In this document: positions 23,291 through 53,732 of the stretch, piece after piece
Layout: the number at the start of each line of letters is the position of its first letter
Position numbering within the stretch: position 1 is the stretch's first letter
Assembly: GCF_963853765.1 (NCBI RefSeq)
Contig: NC_088856.1
Coordinates: 27,342,001 to 27,406,000 of the forward strand
Source: Magallana gigas
Lineage: Eukaryota
Direction: 5' to 3'
DNA: 64,000 nt
Translations under genes and position numbers: made by a program
Notes under the pieces: model-generated
Seen by the model: the letters and a program-made list of their open reading frames with translations, nothing else
The model's database searches: none
Told to the model about the DNA's origin: nothing

Positions 23291-23327
23291 AATCTTTACC
23301 GAAACAAAGATTCAGATAAAATATGAG

Positions 23328-23751: not shown

Positions 23752-24737
23752 TTCTAGGTAAGAATGGACGAAGGCACCATGTATTTTTCTTTTTTATCAG
23801 AACACATCTCTTTAAAGGACTGAATGATAGTGGCTATTTTAAAAACCATTTTTTAATCCACTGAGACCTCCTTAATTAAAGGAAATTAAAATCTACAATC
23901 ATAAAGTGTAAAAGAAAATGTTCAAATATTAAAGCAAAATTGTATAGAATTTTTCAAATTAATGTTTATATTGAGCCTTAAAATAATTTCTTAAAATTTC
24001 AGATAGATCTGATTGTATATATTGTTGACCACCCAGTACAATCAGACACTTTAAAGGTTTGCATTGACAGAATATTAATCGTCTATATACAAGCTTTGGC
24101 ATGGATACAAATTGCACATATGCGATTTCTATTGCATTTTTATATGTGCATGATTTCTTGATTCAGAAAGGAAAACTTTGCAAATGTGATAGAAGATTAG
24201 AGAAAATCCCGTTTAAAAAAATAATGTTTCCTTTTGAAAGAAAAAGGAGCAGAATTTTTCTGTTACTTTACAGAACATTTTTAAAAAATTTAGATTAACA
24301 CATTTTGACAGCATGATAGTATAAGTGTGTGAAGAAATTTCATTCTGTATTTGCCATTTCACAGCGATGTATTATTCATACGATGTACTCAAAGCTGATT
24401 TCTTAATTTTCTCATAAAATAATGACATCTTTTATCAAATAATAAAATTCCATGGTTTCAAAATCATTTTGAATAGAGGAAAAGCTTGGCTTATCTTTTG
24501 TTAAATATTATCTTTAATCTTAAATCTATTAACTGGAAATAAAATCATGCTCCAAAAACGTCCCTAATTATTGACAACTGATAACTACTAGTACATGTAA
24601 AAGCCGATTACTAGACAAGTACATTAACAAAAGCATGGACGTATCTTATATACCGTGCATCTGCATCATGCAGGCTTTAAAATCTCAAATATAAAAACAA
24701 AGAAAAAAGGAGATTTGAATTCTGAATAAATAAACAA

Positions 24738-25506: not shown

Positions 25507-28209
25507 ATGCGGATTCTTCTACTCCCGTGCTCTCTTTATTTAATTTGCAGGATCTCAAGTTTGTTTGCTTAATTGTATATTTTGATTTAAAAGGATATTC
25601 TTTATTAATGTTTTTCAATTTTAAATAAGATGACATTCATTTTATAATTTTTAGACTGGGTCACACCAGAACCCTGTACGTTTTCCCCGCACACCGATGG
25701 ATGTGGAAACCATGGATGGATGTGGCAATGCGGACACCGTAACCTATCTGTGATACCCAATGGTCAGCACATACCACCAGAATATACAAGGACATCATTG
25801 ACATTGGACTTATCCAAAAACAGTTTTACCGCAATATCCAGAAAAACATTCAATACCATTGGCCAATTTCTTCGATCAAGAATCGCATCTCTTTCATTAC
25901 GGGGCAACCCTATTCAATCTATTGGAAATTTTTCTTTCAAAGCTCTATGGAATCTTTGTGAATTAGATCTTTCTAGCTGTCGTCTGCATACGGAGTCTTT
26001 TGAAATTAATTCACTTGCGAATCTGAATAAATTGAACATTTTATGTCTTCATAGTAATTCATTTCAGGCCAGAGGATACCCCGATGTTGCTATTTCAAAG
26101 GCAAGGACAATAGAAAACTTGACAATTGATGTGTTTGATGGATTTCAGTTTGGTTCGTCGTTTCAAAACTTAACTAATTTGAGAATTATAGAATTTTTCA
26201 CCGGAAACTCTATGTTCCATTTAACAAATTCTACTTTCATCGGGTTGATAAAATCTCCAATAACAAATTTGGAATTGAAATTCAGAAACATGATACATTG
26301 TGATGTCAGTGAAGATGTATTTTGTTCGTTTCCTTTTTTAAGAGGTGTACATATTGCGTTTAGAGGAATGTGTGATCTGAACGTAGCATTAAATTCGTTG
26401 AAGTGTCTTCAAAATCGGACCATGGACCACATTATTGTAAACGACAATAAACCAATGATTGTCACAAAGCAAGTGTTCCTCAATAATGAAAATTGCAAAT
26501 ACCTATTCAATATTTGCTCCAAAAGAGTTGAACTCAATGGAAATCGTATCGCAGGAATTTCTGACAACCCTTTAAACACAGTTATGGGTCAATGCGTGGA
26601 ATACTTTGATATTTCATCAAACAGGATCGAATGGATCAATCCCCAGATTTTAGTGGATTTTTTGACACGATATCCAAATCTACAGGTCATAAATATAAGC
26701 TCAAATAATGAACTTTGCAATTGTGAGACATCCTGGCACAACCCTTACTCACAGGTAGTAGCTTCAAGAATGACTGACAATAATGAAACCAATGAGTTTT
26801 CATCCGATGTATTTGTTGTGAATGAGTTTTTCTCAAACATTTCAAGTAAAGTACTTTTCATCAAGAGAGGTGTTATAACTATTAAGATTTCCGAAATAAT
26901 AACAGTGCTGCAGCTCTCAAAAATGTACCTACATATATTCAGTACTTTACCTCGTTATAATTTAATACTGACTATCAATGCCAAAAATTTAAAAGAATTA
27001 TACATGGTGCATAGTAATTTCTCATGTCAATCTTTGGCACCTATTCAGGCTCCTTCGTTGGAAATAATTGACATTTCCAATAACGACTGCAGCATAATAG
27101 GAGCAAACATTTTTAATTTTACTTTAAAATTAAGAGTTTTTTTGGCATCGAATTCAAATCTTCGTTTTGCTAGTAGTCTTCGATACGGAACCCTTTTCCA
27201 TGACCTGAAAAAATTACAGAAAGTTAATGTTAGTCGCAATTCAATAACATATTTGCCACCAACCATGTTTGAAGATCAGCAAAATTCGCTGTTAACTGTG
27301 AATTTGGATTCTAATCTGTTCTCAACAATTCCCGTGTCAAATTTGAAAAATCTTACTCACTTGTATTTGCGTCAAAACAAAATTTCATTCTTCACAAAAA
27401 ATGATATTGAAAGAGTAATGTCAATGGAAAAGGCTGTTGTTTTCATTGAAGGAAACCCAATAAGTTGCGAGTGCACACACATTTGGTCATTGAAATGGAT
27501 GAAAGAAAACCAAGACAGATTTGTTGATTTAAATAAAACTTTATGCATCAACACAAACGTGTTACTTTCGACATTTGGAAACCAAGAGGTATTTGAAAAG
27601 TTTGAAATGATGTGTCAGTCAGATGCTTGGTTGATAGGTTCAATTTTTGCATTTGTTTTTGTAATTGTTGTTTTGCTTACTTCAGCAGCTATCAAACAAT
27701 ATCGTGTCCATGTCGATTATGTTATCTTGCGTATGCGTAGTCGATGGAAAGGCGTCATACACGTTGCAAATTCGGACGATTTTCCGTTTGATGCTTTCGT
27801 CAGCTACACCGAGGAAGATTACCCTGCATGCATTCCTTTTTACCAAGCTCTCACCAGTCTGGGTTTCAAAATCAGCATACCCGACAAAGATTTTTTACCC
27901 GGAATATCTGAAGCGGAACAACTACTCAAATGCATGGATCAGAGTCGAAAAGTTGTCATTATTGTTACCGAAAATTTTCTAGAAAACGGCTGGAACTCCT
28001 ACGCTGTGCAAATGGTTGTAACTCATGCTTTTCACAACCAAAGGGAACGGTCGATTATAGTGATAATTAAAGATGACATTCCCATCGAGCGATTGCCAAG
28101 GGATCTGAAATATATCTGGTGGACCATTGTCAGCATAAGATGGCCAGATGGAAATGAGAACATGGATTTATTCTGGGAAGAGATTGCTGCTGCTTTACGC
28201 ACTAATTAA
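25507..28209 (+). CDS. Toll-like receptor TLR-B, full length (exons 25507-25558, 25655-28209; ~868 aa)
   Basis: Signal exon MRILLLPCSLYLICRIS, phase-1 GT-AG intron, LRRs, LRR-CT, TM, complete TIR (FDAFVSY, PDKDFLPG, SRKVVIIV, FWEEI). Confidence 0.93.
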
Positions 28210-28499
28210 AAAAAAATAGTATAAAAATGAGTTTGTGACTTGTCCGTTGTGTCCATATTGTATCTCAAGACAATAGAGAGTTTAAGCATTTGACGTTTTA
28301 CGTGTACCCATACGTGTAGAGTTAGAAGAAAGATTACAAATACCCGATCTAACAGCACATCTCGTTTAACAAACTGCATATGTATGCATATGTTTAGAGA
28401 AAGACGTCACAAACTAATCATTTGGATGGAAATTTGAAATTAACTAATCAACATTATTGTTTGATAAGTACAATCGTAAATAAAACTGTCTCAAAACTA

Positions 28500-29450: not shown

Positions 29451-31889
29451 AATTTAAAAGAATGCCTTTTTTTTTTATACAGAAGTCTTTATGAATATAT
29501 CAAACGCAGGAACTGATGTTTCATTTACGCATATATGTATCATTCAAGTGGTCTACCTTGATGTCTTAGAAAAAGTACGTGTTTCTTTGGATCTGAAATA
29601 TTATAGATACACTAGTGAAATTTTTTTTTTTGGGTATTGGCTGGTAAACAAAGCTTGTTATGGTCAAATCAAACGATAACAATGTATATAACTTTCTCAT
29701 GATAAATTTGAAAACAAATTTTATTATTTTTTTTTTAGATTGTCTTTTATAGAATAAAAATGTATTTATTTGTTATTTTGTCCTTTTCTTTCTTTCTTTT
29801 TTTTTTTTTTTTTTTTTTTACAAAGAATAATAAACATCTAAAACTTTAAATTGCTAGTCTGTTTAAAGAATTAATTTCAGTTAATAACGATACAACTACA
29901 TAATTCTTCATACGGTCTTGCAAAATGCTTGTGATTAGTAATGTACTTTTTTCACATGCAAAAAAATAAATAACAGATAAAAACTCTGCACATTTGTAAA
30001 ACTACTTGCGCATTGTTTTTTTTTATTAATTTTCTTTTATCAATGCTGTCATATGATTAATTGATTAGAAATTGAGTTTGTCTCAAATTTGTCATTGAAT
30101 AAATGTAGGTCGGACGCAGGAAAACAAGGACATATAATAAGAACCTTGAAATCATTTATACCCATAAAATCCCCAACCACTATCACATTTGAAATATTTC
30201 CTGAATTAATGCATACTTTCTACGGAACAAAGCAATCTTTCTCTTGTCAGTTCCTTGTCATTTTTTAAATTAATTTTGTAAATTCATAAACGATATTTCC
30301 CGTAATCAAGCCTCGTAATTTCCTTTCTTTGTATTTACAGATAAAACATCATAGATGTAGCTATACTTCAGACTAACACACAGAAGAGAAACAAGTACTA
30401 CCATTACCTTATTAGAATAAAAGCGATATTTTAGAATAAAAATTACATGTAAAAGATTTGGTAGATTGGAGTGATTACTTCTTTTCACCCCTTTACACTT
30501 TCCACTCAAAAACTTCACAACCTCATCTGATATCGCATCTCACTTTCTTCGCACCTATTCGCAACCTTTTCTCCCACTTTAATTTAACTCACCCTCCTGA
30601 TAACTTAATCGTCATCTTTAACTTCGGTCTGGACGTAATTACCTTGATAAACGAAATCGCCTTTAAGTGCAAAAATTTAGATACATGTATACTTTATTTC
30701 CGTGCTGTAAAATTGAACATTTGCATTTAACTTGCTAACTGCCATATCCTAAGACAAACCTATTATTTGTAACAAATCAATTTCCACCTGATTCATTTTA
30801 ACTCTCTATGATAATGTGTCCCATACTAAACTTATTCAAACTTTTACAGTATTCATTAAATCAATGAAATACTTGTCATTGCTATTACAGTTTTTTTTCT
30901 TTCCTAAAATATTTTCTTACTATTTAATTACATGTATAAAAGTCTTAAATAAAAATTCCCTTTAAATTCGAGAATATTTTTGTATACCGGTATTAAACTT
31001 AATTTAGTCAGTAAGAAGTGTAATGTTTGCACTTATCTCTCACCAGTTTTATAGCATGATATCAATTTTAAGTCATAATTTTTTGTTTTGCATTCAATTT
31101 TAAAAAAACTCAAAATAACTAAAATATTTCTTTGTGCATGTTTATCAGATTTGTACACTCCAGTAATTTACTTTGTTTCCCCTGCAAGCATTAGTGTAGT
31201 AACTCATTAAATTCAAAACTTTCTTTTGAGCTTTCAGATTGTGTTACTTTTTATGATTAACTGTTATTATTTATTCAAATCTGAATTAAAACCACTATCT
31301 TTTATTTTTATTGCAATGGGAATATTTTTTCTATTTTGTTTACTAGCACCGGAGATTTACTCTCGGATATAAAATAAGGGCCGTAACAATGATTCGTGCA
31401 AGTATTTTGTCAGTTGAGCATATCAGAAGAGATTTGTTCAACCTTGATACAATTCATATATATAATTACAAGAAACAGGTATAGATGGGACAGCTTTTTA
31501 TAAATCAAAGAAGATCACTATTGTTTCTACGTATTGATTTGGTTTTAAACAGTATATCCTGATTAAAATAAAGATAAAACTTCATAGCTTGTTGAAGACA
31601 TTTTTATCACTATAATACATTTTTAACCCCAGATATTGATATATTATTTTTTATTACTTTAGGTCATACAGATATATGTTAATTAAGACGGAGTAAAATA
31701 CATACATTATAACTATCAATGAGATTTGATTCCTCGAAGTTTGTCTTATTAAACCGGAAATTTTGAGTTTTTTTGTCGTGTTCCAATATTAACTTCCTTT
31801 AAAAAAGATATCTAAATTTTATATACTCAATATCCCGCCCCCCCCCCAAAAAACCCAGAAAATTAAATACACGAGACGGAAAAGCCAAC

Positions 31890-32272
31890 TGTCATTCAGC
31901 CATGCATATTATCTTTTTTCTTTAATTTGTTTTTAGTTCAGGTATTGTTTATATTTACCTATCATATTTTTAGATAGTATATGTTTAACACATTTTTATA
32001 AAGTTTGATGAAGGAGAAATCAAAAGCTATTCAGAACCTTATTTAAATTCAACATACATCGATTGATGAGAAAATATGGCATTGTTGTGGATATGTGGAA
32101 ATCCAACCTATCTGAAATACCCGATCAGATTTCATTGAAGCACAAAGAAGAAAAAATAATATTAGACCTATCAGGGAACCAATTTACAAAAATTTTCTAG
32201 GAAACGTTTTACAATATTGACCCATATGTTCCATCAGCATTAAATATATCTTATTACAGAATAGCCCTCATT
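31890..32272 (+). pseudogene. 5' relic of a D-subtype TLR (psiD2)
   Basis: GTCATTCAGCCATGC and TTAGTTCAG|GTAT match TLR-D exon 1 context; then AACCTATCTGAAATACCCGATCAGATT..ATTAGACCTATCAGGGAACCAATTTACAA..GAAACGTTTTACAATATTGACCCA aligns to TLR-D 51272-51395 with stops and indels. Confidence 0.8.
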
Positions 32273-32560
32273 TTTTGTAAACAATGTCAATAATGAGCAG
32301 TTAGAACGGCTATGTATGCACTGAACGGGAAATTGGAATGACCGAAGTTAAGGAAAATGACATTTTTTAGATAAAAAGCGCCAGTCTATTTAACCAGAAT
32401 CGCAGGAATATTTCACTACACNNNNNNNNNNNNNNNNNNNNNNNNNNNNNNNNNNNNNNNNNNNNNNNNNNNNNNNNNNNNNNNNNNNNNNNNNNNNNNN
32501 NNNNNNNNNNNNNNNNNNNNNNNNNNNNNNNNNNNNNNNNNNNNNNNNNNNNNNNNNNNN

Positions 32561-33447
32561 GAAATTCAGGGGACCATGCAAATTATTTCAATATATTCGT
32601 ATTTCAATATAAGCGAAATTGACTGACATGAGTCCGCCATTTTTGAAAGTTCAATCCCGATGTAAGCATAGAAAACCAAACCCGAACAAATTATTAGATC
32701 ATCATTTATCTATTACAATAAACGGATTACATGGAAGATAAGTCCTTGAAAGTTTGATTAAAATTATATCCGAAAGTTTTGTAAGTTTCGTTTTGTTACT
32801 ATCTTAAACCTCATCATAATCTCGGATCGCATTCTTTTACGTTTTAGAAAAACATTAGAGAAAAATCACCACACTGATCAAACGCTTCAAATATTACTGA
32901 ACGCTGCTTGTATATCATCGTAAGTGTACACGCGATAATCTCAAAATCTTTAGCTGTTTCGAATTTAGGCTTTGTTCTTTCATAAATAGCCATAACTAGT
33001 TTGTATTTAGCGTCCGGAGATAAAGTATTTCTTTTCTGTGGGGTTTCCATATTACGTCTAGCCTCAATACATCCGTATTTGTAAAAACAAAACATTAAAC
33101 AGTGAATAAATTTTACTTTTTAATAAAAGTATAAAAACACACATGAAGAGAACTTATCAATTCACACCATTGTATATCAACCGGTCAGTCTGGCATAATT
33201 ACTGTCACTAACCATGACGACAGCCGCCAGGAAGGAATTCAATATAACCGTTATAAAAACAACTAATTATCACCTTTGGGGACCAATCATTGGCTTCAAT
33301 ATAAGCGATATTTCAAAATAACCGATTTCATTTTATCCGTGAAATCAATGCAAAGAATATGAGAGGTAAAAACTGGGGATTTATTTCTTTTTCAAAATAA
33401 GCGGAATTTCAAAATAAGCGAGTTCAATATAAGTGGAGTAAGCTGTA
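32561..33447 (-). mobile_element. pogo/Tigger-like element with a partial CENP-B/Psq-type HTH transposase N-terminus; one end lies in the N gap
   Basis: METPQKRNTLSPDAKYKLVMAIYERTKPKFETAKDFEIIACTLTMIYKQR..KRKRMRS resembles the pogo HTH; terminus ...GAGTAAGCTGTA with TTCAATATAAGCG subrepeats at both ends. Confidence 0.7.
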
Positions 33448-36400
33448 TATTTAAATGCTATTTAAATAACATTTAATTATTGATGTAATGTATCAATTAA
33501 TTGGTATATTCATAGCGTAATGACAATCATCCCTTCATAAATGTATAACAAAAAATTTATAATATACATTGCAGGAGTAAGACGAAAGCGGTTATTGTAA
33601 ACTGGTAGCATCACAATGATCCCCGATACATTTACCAGACTTAATTACCAGCAGTATCATGATTGCAAATGTATAGTATATGTCGTTGTTTTTTATTGAC
33701 TTGTGTGTGCTTCCTTCATCATTTTTCTTAAACTAAAACAGTTTAATTCTAGAGGCAGAAGACAATTGGTATTTAATCCATTATTAATCGATTAAGGTTT
33801 CATAAAATAAAGGGCAAGACCTAGTTAATAATTCTAGACTGTCTTTGTGGTGCCAGAACCAGTTTGACGTCATTATTGATTTGATGAACCTTTTCCCGTA
33901 TTTTACGGCTTCAAAGAAATTAATATGTAGAAAAGAAATATTTTCACATTCTATATTTAATCACGGGAAAAGTAACCCCGGTGTCTATATTCTATTTGAC
34001 ATTATTTTAAAGAGGAGGTCAAGAGCTTGTTTAATGCCTTTTAGGAGAGATTCTAGGCATTCTAGATACATTTCATTAGTCAAAAATGGACAAACTCCTA
34101 GATTTTTTACTTTTATCCTTCATATTTCATAGAAAATGGTTGTTTAAAACATGATTTTTCATTGTGTCTACCTAAAATTTAAGCCCCTGTAAACCATATG
34201 AAACAAAGACCATTGTTATGAAGCATCATTAAAAGAATTTATATTTGGAATTTCATAAACCTGTAGGCACATTTCGTTTACTAGATCTTGACCTCAAACA
34301 CTGTTTGACAGCCCTAGGCGGAATCCTATAACAAAATATATCTGTGAAAATATTTCTTAGGATCTACCTGCTGTAGAGCTTATAGCGTGAAAACTAATCC
34401 GTAAACTTATCATCACTTAACCAAATCTTATTTTGTTATTGTTGTTGATATCATTCTATATAACTAATAGAACATAATTTAAGTTAGAGTCCACTGAAAT
34501 AATAAAAAAGACCGGAATTGTAAGATGAATATTGAGTTTAAAGTCTTTATTGCTATATAAAATTTATACCTGTCAACTTTTCTTGAGATAATAGGAATTA
34601 CGCAAATAATGCATAATGTTATAATCTGTCCAAAAATATCATGGCATCCGATTTTGCTTATAATCATGTCTTATTCATAAATACCTCTAGTTTTTAACAA
34701 TACTTATTTTCTAGGTACTAAAAATATTATAAAGTTTTTTTTTATTTTATTTTATTATTATAGACAATAAAGACAAACAGAAAAGTTCATGTAATATTTT
34801 TATTTTTGTGATTTGGCGATTGTGGCAACCACCTACATAATACAATGATGTCAAAGCTTACAAAAATGGTATGCCATTACGCGCAAAAAAAATTGGCACG
34901 GATCATAACTACAGCAATACCGGAAACATCGGTATAATAATAATATTTTTTTTATAAATAAAATAAATCGTATTATAATTTATTGCGTATTGATTAAGAC
35001 AAAATTTCATTATGAGCATAAATCGATTAATCAGACACCAGGTGTATATATAAGTCCCCTCCAAGGTCAGTCATACGATTTCAATATGTAAATGTATAAG
35101 AGAATCTGCAAAAATGTAAATTTTGTAAGAGTACTAGTACTGTAGACATTTCATATTTAGAAAGTAAAATATATTTCAGAAATATAACCATACATTTCCA
35201 ACTATGGCCATCCTTAACAAAATGGTTAGATAAATCAGGATTTAATATTGCAAGCAGTGTTTTGCAAGTGGCAGTGCAGTATATTTGCTTTACAACTTGT
35301 TGATCTTAAGCAGTAATATTTTATAGCAGATTTTAATAATAAAGTGTCCAAAGACTGTTAAAATGAAGAAGTAAATGATTTTATAACCTTCATGCTAAAA
35401 AAAGAAAATTTTTATAATTGTAATCGTTTTAGCATGTGGACTATGAAATTTAAAAGGCCCTGATTTCTCTTATAAGGTTAAGCATTTATATTGTTTTCAT
35501 AAATTTTTCAGTTACCGTGGAGCTAATCCATAAACTATTTTATCTAACAAAAAAAGTATACTTATGTATTTTATTATAGTTTCAAGGGTACACTTCCGTA
35601 TATCTTTATACAGAATGATCTAGAGAACTTTATAATCAAATCTGGTATCAATGTGCGGCCTCAACCTGGCAAAATTTAGTTCTTTTGAATCTTTAACGGA
35701 ACAAACATTCAAACACTGTTTGAGTATTCTAGACAGAAAAAACAAAGGAAACTTTTTTCAACAGAGAACCTTTGTAAGAGAACTGAATGGCAGTGGCTAT
35801 TTTTTTTTCTAACGGAGATCACAATAGAATTCTATTGTTACATCCCTCAGACAAACAAGATCTATCTAAATATGCAAGTTAGAAAAAATTGAAATTTTAA
35901 AGCCAAAAGATATGGAGCTTGTCAAATGAAAGTTTATTTATTTAGAGTAAAAAATCCTTTCTAAAGATCAAAGCAGATGTTGTTGACCATCCAGAAGCTT
36001 TAATGGTATGGATTGGTAGAAAATTATATCGACCACATTCCTAGGCATGGATATCAAATGCATGGTTGCAAGTTGGTTTGCATTTGATTGTTGAAAGTTC
36101 TATTACTTCTTGACTCAAATACACGTAGGAATACCTTACAAATGTTAAGGATTACAGATATCTAGCACTCTTAAACTTATTTTTCTTTTTCAAATAGTAA
36201 AAGAGAATAATAAATTTCCCGTTACTTAGTTTTTTGAACGTGCGATCAACACATTTTTATAAGACGGTATGATACTTTAAGTGTATAAAGATATTTCCTT
36301 CGATATTTGCCATTTCACAGCTATATATTTTTCTTTACATTGGCGGTGTAATCAAACCACATATGAAGACATCTCTTTTTTCAAACAATCGTGATATCTT

Positions 36401-36911
36401 ATATCATAGATCAAAATTGAGGCGAAAATTGACCAATGTTTGTTGAATTTTACATGAAACCCTTTATCGTAAAATTAGAAATAAAACTATTTTCAAATTA
36501 TCTTGCTTGAATAATTATTGAAAACTGATAATTACATGACAAAGTTAATTCGATAAAATTAACGAAAACATCGAAAGTATCTTATATACTCTAAATCTAT
36601 GTCATGCATGCTTTAAAATCCCTTTTATACAAACACACTAAGAAAAAAAAGATTTGAATTGAGAATAAATAAATAACTAGATAAAAAAGTAAATATCCTA
36701 AGATATAGATATTACTATGTACACGAGCGCATTGCCATAAAGTGAACGTTGTAATTTGTAATGATCTTCCTGTTATCCTTATCAATTCATGTAAATCGCG
36801 CAATCCATGTATTTATTTAATTGATTTTTTTGTGTCTACTATCTATAAGAAAGAGTAAGTTGTGTCACATTGAAACTCCCACAATATCAGCTTGTCTTGT
36901 TTTATGCAGCA

Positions 36912-39575
36912 ATGTGGATTCTTTTACTCTTAATTTGGAGGGTTTCAGGTTAGTTTATATATAAATTTTAAATTGAAGTGTTTTCTTTGTTCATGCATTT
37001 TAATGTGAAATAAGATGTCTCCGTTTTATAATTTTCAGACTGCATCACACCGGAACCTTGTTTGTTTTCTCCACATACCGATGGATGTGGAAACCATGGA
37101 TGGATGTGGCAATGCGGACACCGTAACCTATCTGTGATACCCAATGGTCAGCACATACCATCAGAATATACAAACACATCGTTGACCGTTGATTTATCCG
37201 AAAACCGCTTTACCGCAATATCCCTGGAAACATTCAACACCATTGACTCTGTTCTCCGGTTGTGCATCACATCTCTTTCCTTACGGGGCAATCCCATTCA
37301 ATCTATTGGAAACTTTTCTTTTCAAGCTCTACATAATCTTTGTGAATTGGATCTTTCAAGCTGTCGTCTGCATATGACATCATTTGAAATTTATTCGTTC
37401 GCAAATCTTAATAGTCTGAAAATTTTATGTCTTCATGACAATTCATTTCGGGGGAGCGGTTACCCCGATGTTGCTATTTCAAAGGCAAAGACAACAGAAA
37501 ACTTGACAATTGATGTATTTGACGGATTTCAGTTTAGTTCATCGTTTCAAAATTTAACTAAAATGAGCATTATCAAATTTTTCACTGGAAGATCTAAGTT
37601 CCATTTAACCAATTCCACTTTTCGCGGGTTGATAAAATCTCCTATAATAAACTTGGAAATGATATTTAGATACAGGGTTTATGGTGATGTCAGTGAAGAT
37701 ATCTTTTGTTCTTTCCCATTTCTGAAAGGGGTGCAGATTCAGTTTGGAGGAATGTGTGATATAAGCGTAGCATTAAAATCTTTAAAGTGTCTACAAAATC
37801 GAACTATGGACCACATTGTTGCAAACGGAAATGAGCCAATGATTGCTAAAAAAGCACTGTTTCTTGATAATGAAAATTGTAAATATCTCTTTAATATTTG
37901 TTCCAAAAGAGTTGAATTAAGTGCAAATCGTATCGTGGGAATTTATTACAATCTTTTGAACACTGTGATGGGTCAGTGCATGGAATACTTTGACATTTCA
38001 TCAAACAGCATCGTATATCTCAACATATGGTACTTGACAGATTTTTTGACACGATATCCAAATCTGCAGGTATTTAACTATAGCTCAAATAATGACAATT
38101 GTAATTGTGATGGTTCCTTGCAGTATCCTTTCCAACAACTTGCAGCAACAAGAATGATTGAAACCGAAACATTTTCACAGAATGCATCCAATATTTTTGT
38201 ATCTAACAATACAAGAAAAACACATTTTAAAAAAAGAGTGATAATAACATTTAAAATGTCGGAAAAACTAACAGTGTTGCAGGTCTCCAAAAATCATGTG
38301 AAACTGTTTACTTTTCCCTCACTTTTTGATTTAGCTGTTATTGCCAAAAATTTAAAAGAATTATATTTAAATCATATTAACTTGCCATTTAAATATATGT
38401 TACCTATTCAAGCCCCTTCCTTGGAGATTATCGACATTTCGTACAATGATTGCAGGGAAATAAAAGCAGACTTTTTAATGTATACTTTAAAACTGAGAAT
38501 ATTTTTGGCATCTTATACAAATTTAAGCTATGCTGGTACTCTTAAAAATGGAACATATTTCCGTGGATTAAATAACCTTTGCATAGCTGACTTAAGCCGC
38601 AATTTGTTAACTTATATGCCAGCAGCAATGTTCGTAGATCAAAAACATTCGCTATTTACTATCAATTTAGATTTTAATTTGCTCTCGACCATTCCTGTGT
38701 CAAATTTGAAAAATCTTAAGCGCTTATATTTACGTCAAAACAAAATCTCATTTTTTTCAAGAAATGCTATTGAAAAAGTATTATCAAATGAAAAGGCTGT
38801 TGTTTTCATTGAAGGGAATCCGATAAGTTGCGAATGCACACACATTTGGTCACTGAAATGGATGAAAGAAAACCAAGACAGGTTTGGAGATTTAAATAAA
38901 ACCTTTTGCATCAACAAAAAAGTGTTTCTGTCGATGTTCCTTCGCCAGAAGGTATTTGAAAAGTTTGAGTTGGAGTGTCAATCAGATGCATGGTTAATAG
39001 GTACCTTCTTTGCATTTGTGTTGCTCATGATTGTTTTACTTACTTCAGCAGTTGTCAAACGGTATCGTGTTCATATCGATTACGTTATTTTACGCCTTCG
39101 TAGTCGATGGAAAGGCGTCATGCACGTTTCGAATTCGGACGAGTTTCGGTTTGATGCTTTCGTCTCCTACACCGAGGAAGACTACCAGCTCGCTTGCATT
39201 ACTTTTTACCAAGCTCTGACCAGTCTGGGTTTCAAAATCAGTTTACCTGATAAAGACTTTTTACCCGGAATATCTAAATCGGAACAACTACTTCAATGCA
39301 TTGACCAGAGTCGAAAAGTTGTCATTATTGTCACCGAAAGTTTTTTAGAAAACGGCTGGAACTCGTACGCGGTGCAAATGGTTGTTACCCATGCTTTTCA
39401 TAACCAAAGGGAACGGTCAATTATAGTAGTAATCAAAGACGACATTTCCATCGCGAGATTGCCTAGAGACCTGAAATATATTTGGTGGTCTATAGTCAGC
39501 ATCAGATGGCCAGATGGAAACGAGGACTTGAATAAATTCTGGGAAGAAATTGTTGCCGCTTTACGCACTGATTAA
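36912..39575 (+). CDS. Toll-like receptor TLR-C, full length (exons 36912-36948, 37039-39575; ~857 aa)
   Basis: Short signal exon MWILLLLIWRVS, phase-1 intron, LRRs, LRR-CT, TM, complete TIR. Confidence 0.93.
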
Positions 39576-41179: not shown

Positions 41180-43099
41180 TAGAATGTGAACAAAGATGTT
41201 ATCAACAAAGTTTATTAGTCTGATTGCAATTCTTTGGAAATTTAAAAATATGTCAATTTTTTCAAAGCACTAAAAGACTAATTCTGAGATATTGCTTATT
41301 TATTAATTGTCTTCTATTTGAACGACTTAGCTTTACCCATGAGACATTCAAAAAATAAACTAATACATATGTAACAAAAGTAGAAAAGTATTTGAAATAT
41401 ATGTATGATATGAAATACATCCAGATCTTATACAGCAAAAAATGCTGGAACAAAATGGTCCGATAACTAAGTCTTACTTAATTAAGTCACATTACGGTAT
41501 AACATATATTTAGTCTCAAGACGGGCATAAATATGTTTACAATTGAGTTAACAAGGATGATGATAATGCTGCTTTTAAATGACCCCTTCGTGAATTATTT
41601 TAAGAATGAACAAACGATGGTGTCTTTGAGAGGTCAGCATTTACATCATTGATTTAGGTACTGATTTTAAATCAGTGATTGGTACGACATACTGATGTTC
41701 AATGGTGAACGTTATGTCATCATCTGTCATGTTTATTTGTTTGTTTGTTTTTGGTAGGTGTTTGGTTTTTTGGAAAAGGGGGGGGGGCTTTAGTAATCTA
41801 AATCATCAGTATGCAGATTATCAAAGGAAAATGTTTGCCGAAGTTCAATATTCTAATAATGTTCAATAAAAGAATTATTTAACAATCTTTTCTATTGCCA
41901 AAATGCACGTGTAACAATGTAATTTTTGCCACTTGCAAAAAACAAACAAACAAAAAAACCAACCAAAAACCAAAAACAAATAAAAACAAAACAAAAGAAA
42001 AACAAAACAGTCATAACAATATACGTATTTGTCAATATGAATAATTTTCGTTATTCTTTATTTCAATGCCTATGGCTTTATGTTCAGATAGTAAACAAGT
42101 CTAAACTGTTAATTTTGAAAAAATGAACTTTGATCGGACACAGTAAAACAAAGATAAGTACTATGTACATAAAAGCCAATCAAACCCAGAAAATTCCCAA
42201 ATTTATCAAATACGAAATATTTCCTGAACTTTCCTTCCGTGTATTGTGTTTAATTGATAATGTCTCTCGTAAAAGTATACTCTTCATTTTTTTTATTTAC
42301 AGTGACCCTAAAACATTTAATTTCCTGCATTAGGCAGAAATTACATTTGATTAACAACCAAATTTTTTTTAATACCTGAAAGCTGATAGAAATACAAAAA
42401 AAAAAATGATATCAACGGTACTAAAATATATATTTATGTCATATTTCATCATCATTTTCTTTAACGGTTTTTTGGCCGGGTAATGTAACGAAGAAATCAA
42501 AGTTTTGAAAAGTGTTAATGCAATAATTGAATTGGAATAAAACTAAAATGGAAATGTTTCTTTAGTCTTAAAATGTGTCACATTGATCATTTTTTACCGT
42601 ACACAACAAAACAGATACGAAAATGCATGGACATGCAGGACAAAGTTAGAAAAGCAAGGTGAAGGATTTTTTTAATAAAATGAATGGTAACCGAAAATAG
42701 GAAACGGCTAAAAAAATCACTATTGTACGTTGAAAAAATGTCGACAAAGATAATAATTTATTTTTTAAAAAGGCGCTTTTGATCCGTTAGCGTTCTAAAT
42801 GTTATGGTTAATCTATCAAACTCTTCTCTATTTAAATGAAATTCACATTTCATAATTGATTGATTAGGTGTGGGCTTTTCAAGACCATACATGTATTTAA
42901 AGAATATGGACCGATTGTTTGTAACCACTGATGATTGAAACATATTTTGCTTAACAAAAAGATCTGACGAAATAAAAAGAAAACCAAAGTAAAGCAAAAT
43001 ATGGTTGTGGTATAGAAATATTGACAGCGTTAGATACAATATTGAGACATATTATTTTATTAAATATGGTAAAATAATGTAAAAGATGGTGCATTAAAT

Positions 43100-44109: not shown

Positions 44110-47100
44110 ATTAACTAAAAGATCAATTGTCTTTTTAAGTCTTGTATAATGGCGAAATGGCAATAATTCTTTTCATTTTCATAGAATTAGAATTTTATCG
44201 TATTCAATACGACAAATCGGGTTTGAACGAAATATTTTTCAATATTAATCAAGCTACTAAATCACTGTGTGTATTCTTTTTAACGTCATTTCCGTAAAAA
44301 CACTCCAGACTATTGTGTTTATTCTGTATTGACAAAGGTTTGTGATCCTTCTGGTTGTTTTCCTCTGTGTTTGTAGCTATAGCAGGGTGGTATTAATAAG
44401 TGTAAATTAAGAAAACTACCCGAATACATATGATTGATAATCATTCGTAAAGATGAGGAAAAATACTAAATGGATTTGCGCCATTCATGTTGGAAACCAT
44501 TGCTCTGTTGAGTTGTTTAATCTAGCGGAAAAACGACAAAGAACTGTATCAGCTAACATTCTTTTATCATTAGTGCTATGGTTTAGTTTAAGATATAGCA
44601 GATGCATATATGTGAATTGTTTTTCACTCACTCAAAGTGATTAATCCTGCTAAAGATACAAAGTGTGTTATTCATTGATTATGATGATTTAAAACAGAAG
44701 AGAACATTGCTTATATTGTTTATGCATATAAATGACAAGCACCGATTCAGAATACAATTTTCAGTTGAAACTGCTGCTGGATTTTCATAAACACTTTAGA
44801 ACAAATATCTATGATAATATGTAAATGATACGTTAAACATTGTCAAATACACCTGTATATCTATTATATCAAATCACTTAATTACTGTATATAATTTTTT
44901 TTTAAAATTACCCCTTAGCTATCACGTTCCTGAAAGTATTTACCGGTNNNNNNNNNNNNNNNNNNNNNNNNNNNNNNNNNNNNNNNNNNNNNNNNNNNNN
45001 NNNNNNNNNNNNNNNNNNNNNNNNNNNNNNNNNNNNNNNNNNNNNNNNNNNNNNNNNNNNNNNNNNNNNNNNNNNNNNNNNNNNNNNNNNNNNNNNNNNN
45101 NNNNTGTATATTACCCGTGTGATAAACCTTTGCTATATCAAACGGGTGATGCTTTATCAAATACTTCCGGTCCGAACTATTTTTGACACAAGCCCTCGCT
45201 TCAACGCTTCAGTGACCTATTTTCGAAGATATGCTATAGTACTTTCAACATAACTATATCTATTACAAAAATTAGTATAAAATATTTTGTCAAAGATTTA
45301 AATTACAAATATGAAGTAAAACACATAACTGCGAGGCACAGGCGTCGGAACCGGGGGCTATTGTGAGTGGGGCCGGGGGGTTAGCCATTATTTTTTACCG
45401 TAACCACAAGACCCTTTTTTCTTGTTTGTCAAGATTTTTGATAAGTTTAGCCCACTTCCAACTTTCAATTTGCGTTGTGAAGTTTATAAAACTGCAAATT
45501 ACGTTAACTATCAAGGAGTTCATCTTTACGACGCGATGAAAACAGAGCGCTCTGGTTGTGTTTATATACAAGAACTTAACGAAATAATGTTTCATAAGAC
45601 TTTTATTCCACCACCAGTAAGCATCCTTATTCACTATTTTCAATTTCGAATCATAAGGCTAGGCTAGTGTTTGTTTTATTAAACATCAACAACTTTTCCT
45701 CGTTCGAGTCAATTCAAACTAACGAGCATTCGCAACTTTGTGTATGTCAACAACCTTGATTATTCAAGTCTTCTAATCGGAATTTCCATTTAATTTAGAG
45801 AATAAGCGCTAAGAAAAATTATGTAGAGCTAAAAAATTATTTTAAGGTTTATTTCAGTGAAACTTTACATTAAAACAGTTAGATTTATCTCAGGAATGCC
45901 GGTATTGTTTTAACTTAAAACTTATTTTCCTAAATCCTTTTCTAATAAATAACTAAAAATGCAGTAACTAGAAACATTTCTGGTTAAACAAGCTGAAAGA
46001 AGCCAGTAAAAATCTATCTAAAGATAAGACAGATGAAAGTCTGCAGTTCTGCACTCATCTCACCGATTCGGTAAATACATGTATTGTTTAATTTCTCATA
46101 AGTTTAGATAACAAGTGCTTGTATTTCCTAACACACTCTTGATATTAAGTAAAACGCTGCATTTACAAGTACAAAATGAATCTGATATGCCCTTAAAAAA
46201 CACAATTCCTTATTTTTATTCTTAACTAGGCGGAGTCTAATTATTTCTACCCTATATATTTTGATGAAATATCTTGCATGTAGTTTTACCGTTATATCAA
46301 TTGTTTTTAGATAAAACAAAAAATTAACGGCCCCTATTTCCTATGTAGTCTTGAATGTTGTCAAATGTTTAGAAGGCACTATACGGGAATTTGTTGAAAA
46401 TGCGCTAAATCTCATTTTTCCGCATACATATTTTTTTTTTATCTCTGCCCATTATTTTTTTCGACCGATTGATTTATTGTTTAGAACTGATCGTGAGGGT
46501 TTCAGCTCTGTCAGTATCTATAGAGCTATGATTCACGCTTGGTTTTTTATGAATTGGAGAGACACAACTGGGTGTGTAAAGTACAAATCAAACAAATAAA
46601 TGCTTTCTCATGTGATTTATGCACGATATGAAGGTGGCAACATTGCAAAAGAATAAAATAAATGAATAAATATAATTAACATAACACGCCCTAGCGGTTA
46701 ATGTAATTTTTTTCTGCGATTATCGCTACCGTCATAACCCGTATGAATCATAAATGGAAGTATTTTGTTGTTTCAATTTACATCCTGCATGATTTCTAAA
46801 TATACGTTACAAACAAAAACTAAACGATAAAAAAAATTGTACATTATGTTCATGCATGTTTTTAATACAAGATTTTTTAAGTCGCACGCATTATGTTTAA
46901 AAAAGTGAGAAACTGTTATCGTGCCTGTACCTACGGTGTCGCAAGTGTTCGGAATATTTTTCTAAACATGAGTAGTTAGTGATAATGTATTACTAAAAAT
47001 GTTTGACATCATAATTACAGCTCATATTTTTACAACCATATATAAAATTATTGACTCCCTATTTTCTGCTATAATACCGATAAATCCTGATCGAAAAAAC

Positions 47101-48405
47101 TGTATAATATTATAAACGTTGAACCTACCACATATTTTTTATCGGAACTTATTCTTTAATTCGATAAGCATTACTTAATCAATTACTCTGTTTGTCAAGA
47201 CCAATCTCGATATATATTCATTTTCTTGTGACAATTACTGAAGAACTTGCAATTGTGAATATCAGACGGTTTCACGATCCCGTCCGAACCTTGGCTTCAT
47301 TTTCGGATTCATTTAATTATTTACGGCTTTAATGAAGTGTGTAAAATTTACAAATGATTTTGGAATGTAGGATACATAAAGACTTATTATGTAGCTTGAA
47401 TACAGCGCACTGACGGTGTATTTATATGACTGCATAAGGTTTGGATTATGGGTAATGGACGGTTGAGAGTTATCTTAAACCGATGGTGAAATATACATTC
47501 AAAACACGGGATCAATCTCTGCATAACGCATGTTTTCTCTATGATACTAAACCTACATATTTGCTATGGAATAGTCACACACAGATGAAAAGTATATGGA
47601 TGTCATTTTTCAGGTGTGAGCACGCCCGAAATGTGAATAAGCAAAAGCGGTTGGGGGGGGGGCTTAGCAATTGTAGAAAAACGATCACAGTAGTTCGAAA
47701 AAAAATGTATAGAAGCGACTGGAAAGTAAAAATATCCCACATACACTAAAAAATACCTTTTTAAATTATGTGAAATTTATCAATATTGGATGGGGGTGAA
47801 TATCATCCGATCTAGGAAAGGGCGCTCTTTTCCATAAATTCTGCATAAAGTCGAATGGAAAAAATCTTTTGAACAGAAAGGGTGGTGTAAAGGGCATGAT
47901 CCTGGCAGTGGTAGAATTAACTACTTTTTCTTATTGTGTTTATCTGTGAATATACAGGTTAAAGTTTAGTTACCGTGGTGATTACTTCAAAAGAATAATT
48001 CAGTGCTGCTACTATAATTGCATCAATAAGTTGTACAATGGATCATGATTAAACAAGATTGTATGATACGTTACTTCTGATATTGTTTTCAAAGTTCATT
48101 ACTAAAATATGACAATTTAATAATTTCTACTCGATGTTCGTAGATGCTGATAACAAAGTGCTGTATTTTACGTTTATTAAACAAATTTATTCACAGTAAT
48201 GATTGTTGACGTTGCGTATGCGAAACACGACGTCATGATTTTCCTATTGAAAAAGCATCACTGCAAATGGGCAAAAAACTCTACTTAGAATAAGCGTATA
48301 GCCATAAAATTTTAGATTTGAGAACTTTAAGATGTGTTTAATTCAATTATGTAAAAATCTAAAAATGTGAAAAAATGTCATAAGCACCCTGTTCTCATGG
48401 GCGCA

Positions 48406-48497
<92 letters not shown>

Positions 48498-49222
48498 GCG
48501 GATTAATGAAAATGATCGTCGTTTTGTTTTTCAGATTAATCCGTACTATGCCAAAATGTTGCTTCAGGGTCACGACTGGCAAAAAAGTTTTAAGACTCGA
48601 TTAATATTAACGAACAGTAGGTGTATATACATCTACAGCTGTGTCCAGATATTTTTTATCCTCTCTCTTCTTAATTGTTTTTTTTTTTTGAATTGGTAAG
48701 TAGATAACGCGGTTTTAAATTTAATACTTAAGTTGTTTTCTTCCTGCATGAATACATTACTTTATTTATGTAAAAAATCATACGTTTTCATTAATGTTGG
48801 TTTTATTTAACAGACACAAGAGGAACCCTCACAAGTTATTGTTCCATTCCAAGGACATGCCTGTTTTCAAACAGTGAGTGTTAAGCCGTGGGAAGTGAAA
48901 TACTGATCATAGTACTTTATTAGAGAAAAAAAAACATTCATATATAAAAATCATTTCAAATGTTGTACGTTATTTTGTATAACATGTAATTAATATCAAA
49001 CTGCAAGAGATTAAGATTTCCCAATTTTTAAAGTGTATTCATTTGTGGTATGGAATTTCAGTAAATAAATCAAAAGAGAGCGAGCTCATCCTAGTTTTAT
49101 GGCCCAGGGGACTTGCATTTGAAAATATGTAAGTAAGGTATGAAATGGTAACTTTTGAGAAATGTATGCTTTTTTCACTGCTTTGACTGTTGTATGCCTT
49201 TAAGATCTTATGTAAAGAAAAA
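44110..49222 (+). pseudogene. Duplicated, dead 5' portion of ARIH2 (promoter region, intron sequence, coding exons 2-3; first coding exon deleted)
   Basis: 44110-44650 aligns to 60540-61050; 44670-44947 to 62310-62580; exons 48535-48616 (INPYYAKMLLQGHDWQK, +14 nt frameshift) and 48814-48873 (HKRNPHKLLFHSKDMP) match 62660-62727 and 62930-62993; intron homology continues to ~63350. Confidence 0.88.
48409..48493. repeat. (AT)n microsatellite, ~42 units
   Basis: Direct reading. Confidence 0.97.
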
Positions 49223-50565
49223 AAAAACATTTCATTTGTCCTCTCAGAAACATGCTTGGGTGGGCCAGAAAGAGTGTATTATCGACGTGCAATGAAGCGT
49301 AGTTTTATCAAATGATTAGCGGAAGGAAATTAAGACAGAATAACCAGATATAAAAAATACAAAACCCTATATTTATTTCCTGTTTCCATCGGTGCTTAAT
49401 ATTTTAAGCATTGTGAAAAAATTGAAATACTTCTGATTTAATAGATTGATCATTGTGATTTGAAACATTAATAAACGCATACATTTTACGAATAGAAAAT
49501 TTCCTACATATATATAATATGGCTGCACGTACGTTTTTAGTGGCGTTTAGGAGTTAGAAAATTGATCATCGACTGATAATAGGAAAACGAAAACCGATAA
49601 AAAATGAATTTGCTGATATGTCCTGATTGTAATTAGTATATGTATAAAAATAGACATTGCAGTAGTTTTTTCTAGTCAATTAAGCCAAATTTCAATGAAG
49701 AAAAATACGTACAAAATTTGCTAACAAACGACATAAAAGGGTACCGCGTTATTTGGCCTCATGTTAAATTTCACCCCTGACGACGAGACGGGTAAGGTTG
49801 TATTAGGACCTTGACGTCGCATTAAATAAAGGTCAAAATAATCAAATTACAAATAAACATGTGTACGTGTTGTTCGCATATATTTCTGAAGTTTTCTTTC
49901 TTTACAATCGATGCATAGCATGCGGGTTGAAAAACCCCAATCATCCGGGGGACAAAACCAAACGGTTTCATTTTTCTAAAAATTCCCGTGATGCCCTTCG
50001 GTTTGTTTTTTTTCCGTTTGCCCAAAAAGAAATTATTTTTATTTACTTTGAATATTTCTAAATTTGTGAATAAGACTGATTCTGCTCGTGTAAATAGGAG
50101 AAAGTCCATAACTTTCTAAGACAATTGGTTTGTGTGGAAAAAAATTGATGCTATTGTAACAAAAAAATCGGACCAAGCAGCTTTAACATGTTATCTAGTA
50201 GATATATCTTGTTTATTAAGCTGTTAAGTAGTAGATATTTTAATGATTTTTTTTTTCAAAAGTACATTTCAAATTGGTTATGTAAGGTTGAACGTTTCAT
50301 TTTATATTACAAAACTAAATATACTCAAAACCCCTGGTGACGCTGTATTTGTGCTCATGGCGCATGAATTAGCAAAGTGTATGAATGGGAAATTGAATGT
50401 AACAGATTTTCAATGCAAACATAAGGGGAAATATACACTGAATGTAAATGTAAAATTGTTAAAGTAACTGTGCCTTTTTCATGTTTTCATTTTATGCTAA
50501 TGGATAAAAACATTCTAGTGTTCAAACGTTTGTGTATGTCCGCAACACACTCTAGTATTCTAACT

Positions 50566-50753
50566 TTCAAATTTCAGCAACAATAATTTTTTTAATGTTT
50601 GTGTCATTCTTCCCTATATAGGAGTGTATAAAATCCCCATCAATTAAGTATAAATTGCAAGAAAATATTTCTACCTTCAAATTTCAGCAACAATAATTTT
50701 TTTAATGTTTGTGTCATTCTTCCCTATATAGGAGTGTATAAAATCCCCATCAA
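50566..50753 (+). repeat. Direct duplication: identical 78-bp block at 110-bp period upstream of TLR-D
   Basis: TTCAAATTTCAGCAACAATAA...CCCTATATAGGAGTGTATAAAATCCCCATCAA at 50566-50643 and 50676-50753. Confidence 0.92.
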
Positions 50754-51015: not shown

Positions 51016-53732
51016 ATGCAAATTTCTTTACTTTTTGGCTTGTTATCTTTAATTGGTAAGGATTTTAGTTCAGGTATGTTTTTTATCTATATTTTCATAT
51101 AATTATTTTTCTCAGATGATATTTGTTTAATTCAACTTAAAAATAATGTAACTATACAACATTTTCTTTCTTTGATAAAGAAGTAATCAGAAATTCATCA
51201 AAATCTTGTATCATGTCAATGCACACCGATGGATGTGGAAATCGTGGACTGTTGTGGCAATGTGGCAACCGTAACCTATCTGAAATACCTGAGCACATTC
51301 CATTAAAATATAAAGGAGAATTTGTGACATTAGACCTATCTGAGAATCAGTTTACAAGAATCACAATGGAAACTTTTCACAATATTGACCCACGTGTTCG
51401 ATCTCGCATTACATCTATTTCATTACGGAATAACCCTATTAGACATATAGGAAACTTTTCTTTTCAGTGTCTTTGGCGTTTATGTGAATTGGATCTTTCT
51501 ACATGTCACCTTCAGAGGACGTCTTTTGAAATAAACTCCTTTGGAAATTCCCTTCTAAATCAATTAAAAATATTAAGACTGCATAATAACTCATTTCGTG
51601 GCAATGGATACCCTGATACTGCTATTTCGAAAGCGAAACTGTTAGAAAACTTGACCCTCGATGTGTTTGGTGGTTTTACTTTCAGTTCATATTTTCAAAA
51701 TTTAACGAAACTGAAGAAAATTGAATTCATCACCGGAAATTCTAAATTCCATCTAACGAATTCCACTTTCCGCGGGTTGATAAAATCTCCTATAGTAAAC
51801 CTGGAAATGATTTTTAAATTCAGGGTATATAGTGATGTCAGTGACGATATCTTCTGTTCGTTTCCATTTCTGAAAGCGGTGCATATTGAGTTTGGAGGAA
51901 TGTGTGATTTGAATGTGGTATTAAAATCTTTAAAGTGTCTTCAACATCGGACAATGGACCGCATTGTTGCATACAACAATAATCCAATGATTGCCAAAAA
52001 TGCAGTATATCTCGATAATGAAAATTGTAAATACCTTTTCAATATCTGTTCCAGAAGAGTTGAACTAATAAAGAATCGTATTGTGGGAATTTATGACAAT
52101 CTTTTGAGCACAGTCATGGGTCAGTGCATGGAATACTTCGATGTTTCATCAAACAGGATTAGAGTTATCAACCCCTGGTACATGCTGGATTTTTTGACAC
52201 GATATCCAAATCTGCAGGTCTTCAACTATAGCTCAAATGCTGATCAATGCAATTGTGAATCTCCCAGGTATAGCCATCGCCCAACACTTGCAGCTTTGAG
52301 AATGATCGACTGTGAAAACGATAAATTTTCACAAATTGCTTCAAATATGTTTGTATCCAACGTTTCAGGTAAAACATATCTTAAAAAGAGAGGGTTAATG
52401 GCATTTAAGATTTCCGAAAAAATAAGAGTGTTAAATTTTTCCAAAAACTATTTAAACCGATTAACATATCCTTTACCTTTTGATATCTCGCTTAATGCCA
52501 TGAATTTAAAAGAATTGTATGTAGTTCGTACTAACTTCCCATGCAAATACATGGCACCCATTCAAACTCCTTTCTTGGAGATTCTCGACATTTCCAACAA
52601 TGACTGCAGCGAAATGAAAATGCGAATTTTAATGTTTGCCAAGAAACTACGGATTTTTGTGGCATCTAATATAAACCTAAGCTTTGCTGGTAGTTTAAAA
52701 TATGGAAAACTTTTCCGTGGTGTTATGAGCCTTTGCAAAGTTGACTTAAGTCGCAATTCGTTAATATATTTGCCACCAGCCATGTTTAAAGATCAGGAAA
52801 AATCTTTATTAACAGCGAATTTTGATTATAATCTGTTTTCAACAATTCCTGTTTCAAATTTGAGAAACCTTACTCGGTTGTATTTACGTCATAATAAAAT
52901 TCCATTCTTCACTAGAACGGATTTTGAAAAAATATCGACATTGGGAAAGTCTGTTGTTTTTATTGAAGGAAATCCGATAAATTGCGAGTGTACAAACATT
53001 TTGTCACTGAACTGGATGAAAGAAAATCAAGACAAGTTTGGGGATTTGAATAAAACTCTATGCATCAACCAAAATGTGTTCCTGTCGAACTTTTTTCAGG
53101 AACAGACATTTAAAAAGTTTGAGTTGATATGCCAGTCAGATGTTTGGTTGTTAGGTTCCTCATTTGCATTGGTTTTTGTTATAATCATTTTGCTTACGAC
53201 AGCAGCTATTAAAAGATATCGTGTTCATGTTGATTATATTATTTTACGCATGCGCAGTCGATGGAAAGGGGTTATGTGCATGGCGAATTCTGAAAAGTTC
53301 CGATTTGATGCTTTCGTCACATACACTGAGGAAGACTACCAACTCGCCTGCATTACTTTTTACCAAACTCTCGTCCGTCTTGGTTTCAAAATCAGTATGC
53401 CTGATAAAGACTTTTTACCCGGAATATCTGAAGCGAAACAACTACTTCAATGCATCGACCAGAGTCGAAAAGTTGTCATTATTGTCACCGAAAATTTTCT
53501 AGAAAACGGCTGGAACTCGTATGCTGTGCAAATGGTGGTTACTCATGCTTTTCACAACCAAAGGGAACGGTCGATTATAGTGATAATTAAAGATGACATT
53601 TCCCTCGAGCGGTTACCGCGAGACCTGAAATATATTTGGTGGTCCATTGTCAGCATAAGATGGCCAAATGGAGACGAGACTATGGATAAATTCTGCGAGG
53701 AGATCTGTGCTGCTTTACGCCCCGATCCATAA
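51016..53732 (+). CDS. Toll-like receptor TLR-D, full length, second subtype (exons 51016-51073, 51181-53732; ~869 aa)
   Basis: Signal exon MQISLLFGLLSLIGKDFSS, phase-1 GT-AG intron in frame with the 839-aa ORF; LRRs, LRR-CT, TM, complete TIR. Confidence 0.92.

Follow-up and report, generated by a model that had tools for sequence, protein, structure and literature searches.

A Toll-like receptor gene with a D-like core between A/B-like ends in a tandem array of the oyster Magallana gigas

Bivalves have, to our knowledge, the largest TLR repertoires, and the array discussed here raises the question of whether one of its members, TLR-C, descends as a whole from a single ancestral gene or combines the parts of two. 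The array lies in a 64,000-nucleotide stretch of Magallana gigas DNA (RefSeq assembly GCF_963853765.1, contig NC_088856.1, positions 27,342,001 to 27,406,000 of the forward strand), which we call the window, and comprises four tandem TLR paralogs with long open reading frames on the plus strand: A, B, C (TLR-C) and D. The proteins of the window match RefSeq "toll-like receptor 4" entries of Crassostrea (Magallana) gigas at 98-100% identity; B, C and D show leucine-rich repeat (LRR) and TIR matches in Pfam, and A shows LRRs only, with no TIR match. In a rooted protein tree the four form one clade relative to outgroup proteins that include Crassostrea virginica, and no further close paralog was found in the genome, where the next best match has 39-43% protein identity. 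A sequence-only reading of this DNA had proposed that TLR-C is a recombinant with B-like ends around a D-like LRR core, produced by a shuffling of LRR blocks between subtypes. Our analysis bears out the mosaic, places two breakpoints in it, and finds it in independent samples and in Crassostrea angulata. It is likely, in our judgement, that TLR-C belongs by origin to an A/B-type duplication unit, and that a stretch of about 1.0 kb in its central LRRs was replaced by D-lineage sequence through gene conversion.

TLR-C is an intact and expressed TLR, transcribed and correctly spliced. Its full coding sequence specifies 857 amino acids; the splice joint 36948|37039, with GT..AG ends, is carried exactly by a contig from an RNA library, and the N-terminus of C. 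gigas protein P0001 (98% identical) agrees with exon 1. A few poly-A RNA reads map on the gene. The extracellular domain matches Pfam LRR_8 (E 3e-13) and LRR_4 and shows LRRNT- and LRR-CT-type cysteine motifs in the alignment, while a hydrophobic stretch starting at residue 664 is followed by TIR and TIR_2 matches at residues 700-807 of the open reading frame. A TTG "start" at 37062 in the list of open reading frames proved to be a tool artefact.

The distribution of shared sites is the first line of evidence for the mosaic. The four genes were aligned by codon, and each variable column was classed by its site pattern. Columns 0-450 (C 37074-37518) hold 8 sites that pair A with B and C with D (AB|CD), 7 AC|BD, 6 AD|BC and 81 unique to D; in columns 450-1650 (C 37518-38690) the corresponding counts are 83, 11, 16 and 91, and beyond column 1650 (C 38690 onward) they are 10, 9, 15 and 49, the D-unique sites being about three times denser at the 5' end. 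When sites uniting C with D were compared with sites uniting C with A and B, the two-breakpoint maximum chi-square reached 64.2 (null mean 10.4 and null maximum 22.6 in 300 permutations), with breakpoints at 37605-37643 (range 37580-37659) and 38625-38634 (range 38606-38660). A permutation walk of the 3SEQ type returned C as the child of (A or B) and D, with a D-like stretch at 37616-38607 (p <= 0.0005). A single topology along the coding sequence with no significant breakpoints, the outcome named beforehand as fatal to a recombinant origin, is therefore not what we found. The patch so delimited covers about the central half of the ectodomain, takes in the mid-ectodomain cysteine motif and an indel-rich stretch, and has pairwise dN/dS values of 0.23-0.44, above those of the ends but below 1. 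Two indels common to C and D correspond to the outgroup state, and must thus be insertions in A+B. Within the patch, divergence between C and D is lowest at 37593-37742, directly 3' of the 5' breakpoint (C differs from D there by 12% and C. angulata C by 9%, against 17-28% in the rest of the patch), which could reflect either a younger sub-tract or local constraint.

Synonymous distances (dS) flip at the same place. In the 5' zone, the core and the 3' third, respectively, dS is 0.30, 0.38 and 0.46 between A and B, 0.91, 0.75 and 0.45 between A and D, and 0.94, 0.91 and 0.64 between B and D; for C, the values are 0.36, 0.74 and 0.54 with A, 0.39, 0.83 and 0.51 with B, and 1.56, 0.58 and 0.71 with D. 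Because the A-B and A/B-D distances hardly change from the 5' zone to the core, C is the sequence that switches partner. The distance of C to A/B is 0.37 in the 5' zone and 0.78 in the core, with no overlap in 2000 codon bootstrap replicates. Subtracting dS(C,A/B) from dS(C,D) gives a positive value in every bootstrap (100%) 5' of the patch and a negative value in 98.6% of those within it. Protein trees rooted with C. virginica, ENA contigs and Saccostrea (46-56% identical) change accordingly: sequence outside the patch yields (D,(C,(A,B))), where A+B+C has 96% support and C+D is rejected (difference in log likelihood, dlnL, 13.4; approximately unbiased (AU) test 0.008), and sequence inside the patch yields ((A,B),(C,D)), where C+D has 88% support. 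Synapomorphies of C+D number 7 inside the patch and 1 outside, those of A+B+C 4 inside and 11 outside (Fisher p = 0.009). The residues of the middle that had been singled out as D-specific need some qualification. The AB|CD pattern itself stands, with its 83 sites, but among the 28 AB|CD residue columns in the patch only 7 are derived in C+D, another 7 are ancestral states lost in A+B, and 14 have no polarity; truly shared-derived C+D residues include FRG, MIF, NLL and LC, and the original list also held retained ancestral states.

The two ends of TLR-C deserve separate consideration. At the 5' end, the upstream DNA and exon structure common to B and C were correctly recognised by the sequence-only reading: besides the splice joint, the B-C alignment is unbroken from 36744 through the proximal promoter and exon 1, and picks up again farther upstream at 35881-36676. 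The B-identical tract, noted as being about 83 bp long, measures 84 bp (run-length permutation p = 0.002 for the pair, uncorrected), and is probably a later short conversion. Outside this tract, however, a B-specific origin of the 5' end could not be upheld, since the AC|BD and AD|BC quartets are balanced in the first 450 columns and the rooted 5' tree, (D,(C,(A,B))), leaves C outside A+B. Judging from these comparisons, what had been called B-like is A/B-clade-like, and B-specific in that one tract only. At the 3' end, the range of dS across all six pairs (0.45-0.71) is near that of a star, and the tree, (D,(A,(B,C))), groups B with C weakly; this B+C clade is favoured by 6.5 log-likelihood units, but its alternatives are not rejected (AU about 0.1), and we do not retain it. 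The LRR-CT was similarly held to be B-like, and a 31-residue string is in fact identical in B and C, but the preference is modest at the DNA level, where 93 nt contain 6 differences between C and B, 12 between C and A and 11 between C and D, and it sits in a near-star 3' third. The closeness of the TIR start to A was seen as described (Table 1), and includes a C-A identical run of 47 bp at 39195-39241 that is not significant after correction for scanning.

Table 1. Coordinates, in the window, of TLR-C, its segments, the other paralogs and the spacer elements.
Feature	Position	Strand	Remarks
TLR-C exon 1	36912-36948	+	Start codon and signal peptide; RNA contig joint and P0001 N-terminus
TLR-C intron (90 nt)	36949-37038	+	GT..AG ends
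TLR-C exon 2	37039-39575	+	LRR ectodomain, transmembrane helix, TIR domain, stop; open frame and Pfam
5' A/B-type segment	36744-37620	+	Proximal promoter, exon 1, intron, first ~580 nt of exon 2
B=C identical tract (84 bp)	37077-37160	+	A differs at 5 sites, D at 19
D-like core patch	37620-38630	+	~1.0 kb; about residues 207-543 of 857
3' segment	38631-39575	+	Last LRRs, LRR-CT, transmembrane helix, TIR; C groups within A/B/C
TIR-start tract	39141-39242	+	C differs from A at 4/102 nt, from B at 14/102, from D at 14/102
Contig coverage of C, run X4	37194-38069 and 38042-39224		
Contig coverage of C, run X12	37303-38069 and 38042-38782		
Paralog A	Open frame 15560, first ATG 15632, stop 17806	+	TIR-truncated; comparison gene
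Paralog B exon 2	Open frame 25648, first ATG 25720, stop 28209	+	Comparison gene
Paralog D exon 2	Open frame 51147, first ATG 51213, stop 53732	+	D-type relative of core patch
B-C spacer	30094-36676	+	Collinear with A-B spacer (20706-24737), 63-74% identity
Element e1 after A	20686-20967		Noncoding
Element e1 after B	30094-30352		Noncoding
Element e1 after C	42100-42226 (end also placed at 42228)	+	Noncoding
Relic F_B	23154-23283		Collinear with F_C, in A-B spacer
Relic F_C	32004-32268	+	Dead D-type intron end and first ~215 nt after HTDGCGN motif
Distal C-D spacer	44227-49202	+	72-75% identical to DNA downstream of D (60638-63332)

As to how such a gene might have arisen, we propose that TLR-C began in an A/B-type tandem unit, from which its upstream spacer, promoter, exon 1, the first ~580 nt of exon 2, the 3' third and element e1 would derive, and that D-lineage sequence then overwrote positions 37,620-38,630 by ectopic (interparalog) gene conversion or, equivalently, by a double crossover. 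The donor would have been a D-type gene other than present-day D. Later short exchanges would account for the 84-bp B tract, and the LRR-CT, transmembrane helix and TIR were probably homogenised among all the paralogs. The flanks speak to the type of the unit. Because the spacers A-B and B-C are collinear, the 7-kb upstream flank of C is of A/B-unit type. Downstream, e1 has three copies in the whole genome, each lying 2-3 kb downstream of A, B or C (2.5 kb in the case of C) with none for D, a number that rules it out as a dispersed repeat. This element is kept at 71-74% identity while most of the surrounding spacer has decayed; it may serve the genes as a common regulatory element or may just be a portion of the unit that decays slowly. 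A/B-type sequence is thus present on both sides of the patch, as the 5' segment and spacer on one side and the 3' third and e1 on the other. Given these flanks, a 3' third of A/B/C type and two breakpoints, we infer an internal conversion patch rather than the product of a single unequal crossover. The direction of transfer would be from a D-type gene into C, because a transfer from C to D would have equalised the distance of C to A/B in the core and the 5' end, which was not seen.

Traces of D-type sequence are also found in the spacers, as relic F_B between A and B (78% identical to D 51171-51437) and relic F_C between B and C (73% identical to the same segment), both lacking the 6 nt inserted in A/B/C. 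A dispersed repeat at 32272-32355 and then a run of N come after F_C. Since D-type relics lie in both spacers, the array grew by copying a unit that starts upstream of an A/B-type gene and ends about 215 nt past the HTDGCGN motif of a D-type gene; the relics mark its right-hand boundary.

Several observations weigh against the conversion of an A/B-unit gene. The distal C-D spacer resembles the DNA downstream of D, and a D-type duplication may once have included C. Under two scoring schemes, only the A/B junction could be aligned among the immediate 3' flanks, and the flank of C matched no other paralog; an apparent C-D identity of 0.67 just past the stop codon, obtained in a global MAFFT alignment, is not real homology, as the 3' flanks of the two genes fail to align. 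A GENECONV-like test of the longest identical run gave nothing for C and D (p = 0.36 and 0.11), the longest such run being 37 bp and located outside the patch, and no long C-D tract survives. We attribute this null result to an exchange too old to have left an identical tract, and for this reason site-pattern and dS tests were used. The patch has no nearly identical donor either: with a C-D dS of 0.58, either the event is old or the sequence came from a D-type copy no longer present. That same value exceeds the C-A/B dS of the 5' zone (bootstrap probability of the reverse order 0.026), and a core older than the 5' split calls for a lost D-type donor or for later homogenisation of the 5' end of C with A/B. 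Lastly, protein data inside the patch do not reject an A+B+C clade (dlnL 8.2, AU 0.13), and the comparison comprises four paralogs with no close outgroup.

Some of these points would sit well with a different history, in which C would have started out as a D-type gene, duplicated along with a 5' fragment of ARIH2, and would only later have received an A/B-type 5' end and possibly the 3' end as well, either by conversion from A/B or by a Lepore-type unequal crossover joining the 5' portion of an A/B-type gene to the body of a D-type gene. The age order would then be as expected, the core being older than the 5' end, and the distal C-D spacer would be a remnant of that duplication, ARIH2 being called downstream of D in C. 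angulata. This scenario is nevertheless unlikely. The whole 7-kb spacer upstream of C is of A/B-unit type, down to its F relic; e1, with its three genomic copies, occurs after A, B and C and is missing after D; the 3' third of C belongs to the A+B+C clade, which demands two breakpoints instead of one; and the proximal 3' flanks of C and D share no homology. The sequence-only reading offered a variant as its own alternative, in which B converted the ends of a D-type gene; the same A/B-unit character of the upstream spacer and e1 speaks against it.

It is also conceivable that no recombination took place and that (D,(C,(A,B))) holds throughout, with region-specific shifts in rate or selection producing the appearance of a patch. 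The protein AU result inside the patch would be in keeping with this, as would the fact that half of the polarisable residues common to C and D are retained ancestral states, and four-taxon data are weak for rooting. Rate shifts alone, however, would not be expected to alter the ranking of the relatives of C, which is what the switch at synonymous sites does. When the gene was partitioned into three zones, branch lengths free to vary among zones (edge-unlinked) were preferred over proportional ones by 2dlnL = 87.5 with 8 degrees of freedom, so that proportionality is rejected; the C+D synapomorphies and the two shared indels are concentrated in the patch, and the flanks are mosaic independently of the coding sequence. 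Taken against these results, an undivided history appears improbable.

An assembly chimera of collapsed paralogs, a known hazard with tandem genes of 75-85% identity and one for which the N gaps in both neighbouring spacers (32422-32560 and 44948-45104) might leave room, is effectively refuted, as each junction is spanned by contigs that come from independent studies and show 0-3 differences, and the same mosaic is present in two independent RefSeq gene models, one from C. gigas (98%) and one from C. angulata. The contigs in question are Logan contigs of DNA runs from two other studies. The C. gigas model, XP_034306625, is 96-99% identical to C by zone, and the C. angulata model, XP_052680708, is 88-95% identical; both show the same zone-wise preferences as TLR-C.

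Comparison with C. angulata also bears on the age of the exchange. The distance of the C. angulata gene to D drops from 0.29 at 37443-37592 to 0.09 at 37593-37742, and the patch of C, taken window by window, is 3-9% divergent from its C. angulata counterpart and 12-28% divergent from D (about 20% overall); the paralogs are therefore not closer than the orthologs here, as they would be under ongoing concerted evolution. The mosaic predates the split of the window copy of C from that counterpart. Over the entire gene (37032-39575 against L033:18124-20667) the two differ at 5.5% of nucleotides, fairly evenly distributed, and at 68 amino acids, compared with 1.0% of nucleotides for B and 0.85% for D, and TLR-C either evolves fast or represents an allele lineage of unusual depth. 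The 139 differences between the two versions of C are scattered and mostly private. Twenty of them swap the A/B state for the D state or vice versa, including 37598, 37605 and 37653 at the 5' breakpoint, and 37653 is also variable among the C. gigas runs examined. We considered conversion as a source of these differences and set it aside: the 20 swaps would agree with minor later exchange, but they are not clearly above what parallel mutation would give. The shuffling of blocks between subtypes thus stands as far as one exchange is concerned, which is ancient (dS 0.4-0.6), fixed and shared with C. angulata; beyond it the data give hints of short tracts, and active shuffling is not demonstrated.

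A more far-reaching synthesis, which we regard as doubtful, would combine these threads: the core of C would be the sole survivor of a lost third D-type TLR that had been co-duplicated with the 5' fragment of ARIH2, the array would still be exchanging short tracts, and C would be a deep allele lineage maintained over time. Candidate traces are the 84-bp tract identical in B and C, the A-like tract at the TIR start, and breakpoint sites such as 37653. If true, this would be a case of an invertebrate pattern-recognition receptor diversified by conversion together with balancing selection.

The Lepore and anti-Lepore fusion genes of the globin paradigm arise by unequal crossover in a tandem array, and carry one breakpoint and flanks from different parents. 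TLR-C resembles them in being chimeric between neighbouring tandem paralogs, but its breakpoints number two and the sequence on either side is of A/B type, a picture into which the resemblance of the distal spacer to DNA downstream of D does not fit. A closer parallel is found in the mammalian tandem genes TLR1 and TLR6, where gene conversion keeps LRR16-19, the C-terminal cap, the transmembrane helix and the TIR domain alike (Kruithof et al. 2007, PMC2077338); the converted block corresponds to the C-terminal 300 residues, and repeated independent events in each species keep the paralogs identical (PMC2077338). In both systems tandem TLR paralogs swap a defined coding block and different parts of one gene have different trees, and in both the LRR-CT, transmembrane and TIR portion is the most homogenised, dS in the oyster array being 0.45-0.71 there as opposed to 0.74-0.91 between A/B and C/D in the core. 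Unlike TLR1/TLR6, where conversion limits divergence, the patch of TLR-C lies in the central LRRs, stems from a single old event and produced a new combination. Zhang et al. (2015, PMC4346834) and Saco et al. (2023, PMC10279657) explain the diversification of bivalve TLRs by tandem duplication, presence/absence variation and selection. The array described here belongs to the same group of organisms and the same family, and consists of tandem single-large-exon TLRs that expanded after the split from C. virginica-type oysters; exchange between paralogs is what our analysis adds to those accounts. The terms "gene conversion", "recombination" and "chimeric" do not occur in the texts of PMC4346834 and PMC10279657, and targeted literature searches found no paper describing TLR gene conversion in oysters or bivalves.

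TLR-C offers a clean and statistically supported case of a central LRR block moved between diverged paralogs in a protostome TLR array, and its product is an expressed receptor whose ectodomain combines parts in a way seen in no other paralog. The mechanism is known and expected in tandem immune-gene arrays, and a single ancient event is no proof of active shuffling. It is plausible that the D-like core provides a new recognition surface, and the patch may affect ligand specificity; the ectodomains of C, B and D constitute a concrete test object for a comparison of this kind.

The neighbouring genes show peculiarities of their own. The loss of the TIR in A is due to a deletion of ~347 bp (A 17793-17841 compared with B 27883-28273), such that A 17798-17841 runs straight into the sequence found after the stop codon of B. 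In C. angulata (L033:2117-2335), the last 146 nt of the TIR-coding region remain just before the same post-stop sequence, and Logan protein P0009 is A-type with the TIR present; because of this remnant and of P0009, the deletion seems to be specific to the present haplotype or species, and not fixed. The D ortholog of C. angulata (L032; merged-stretch coordinates 31995-34579) is 99% identical to D, with a frame broken near codon 554 and an annotated protein of 532 amino acids, and represents a pseudogene or a sequencing error. Around D, the window further contains a perfect palindrome of 84-85 bp at 48409-48493, a pair of direct repeats of ~86 bp (97.7% identical, offset ~110 bp) just upstream of the gene at 50558-50753, and a tandem array with a period of ~62 bp downstream of it at 56325-56687.

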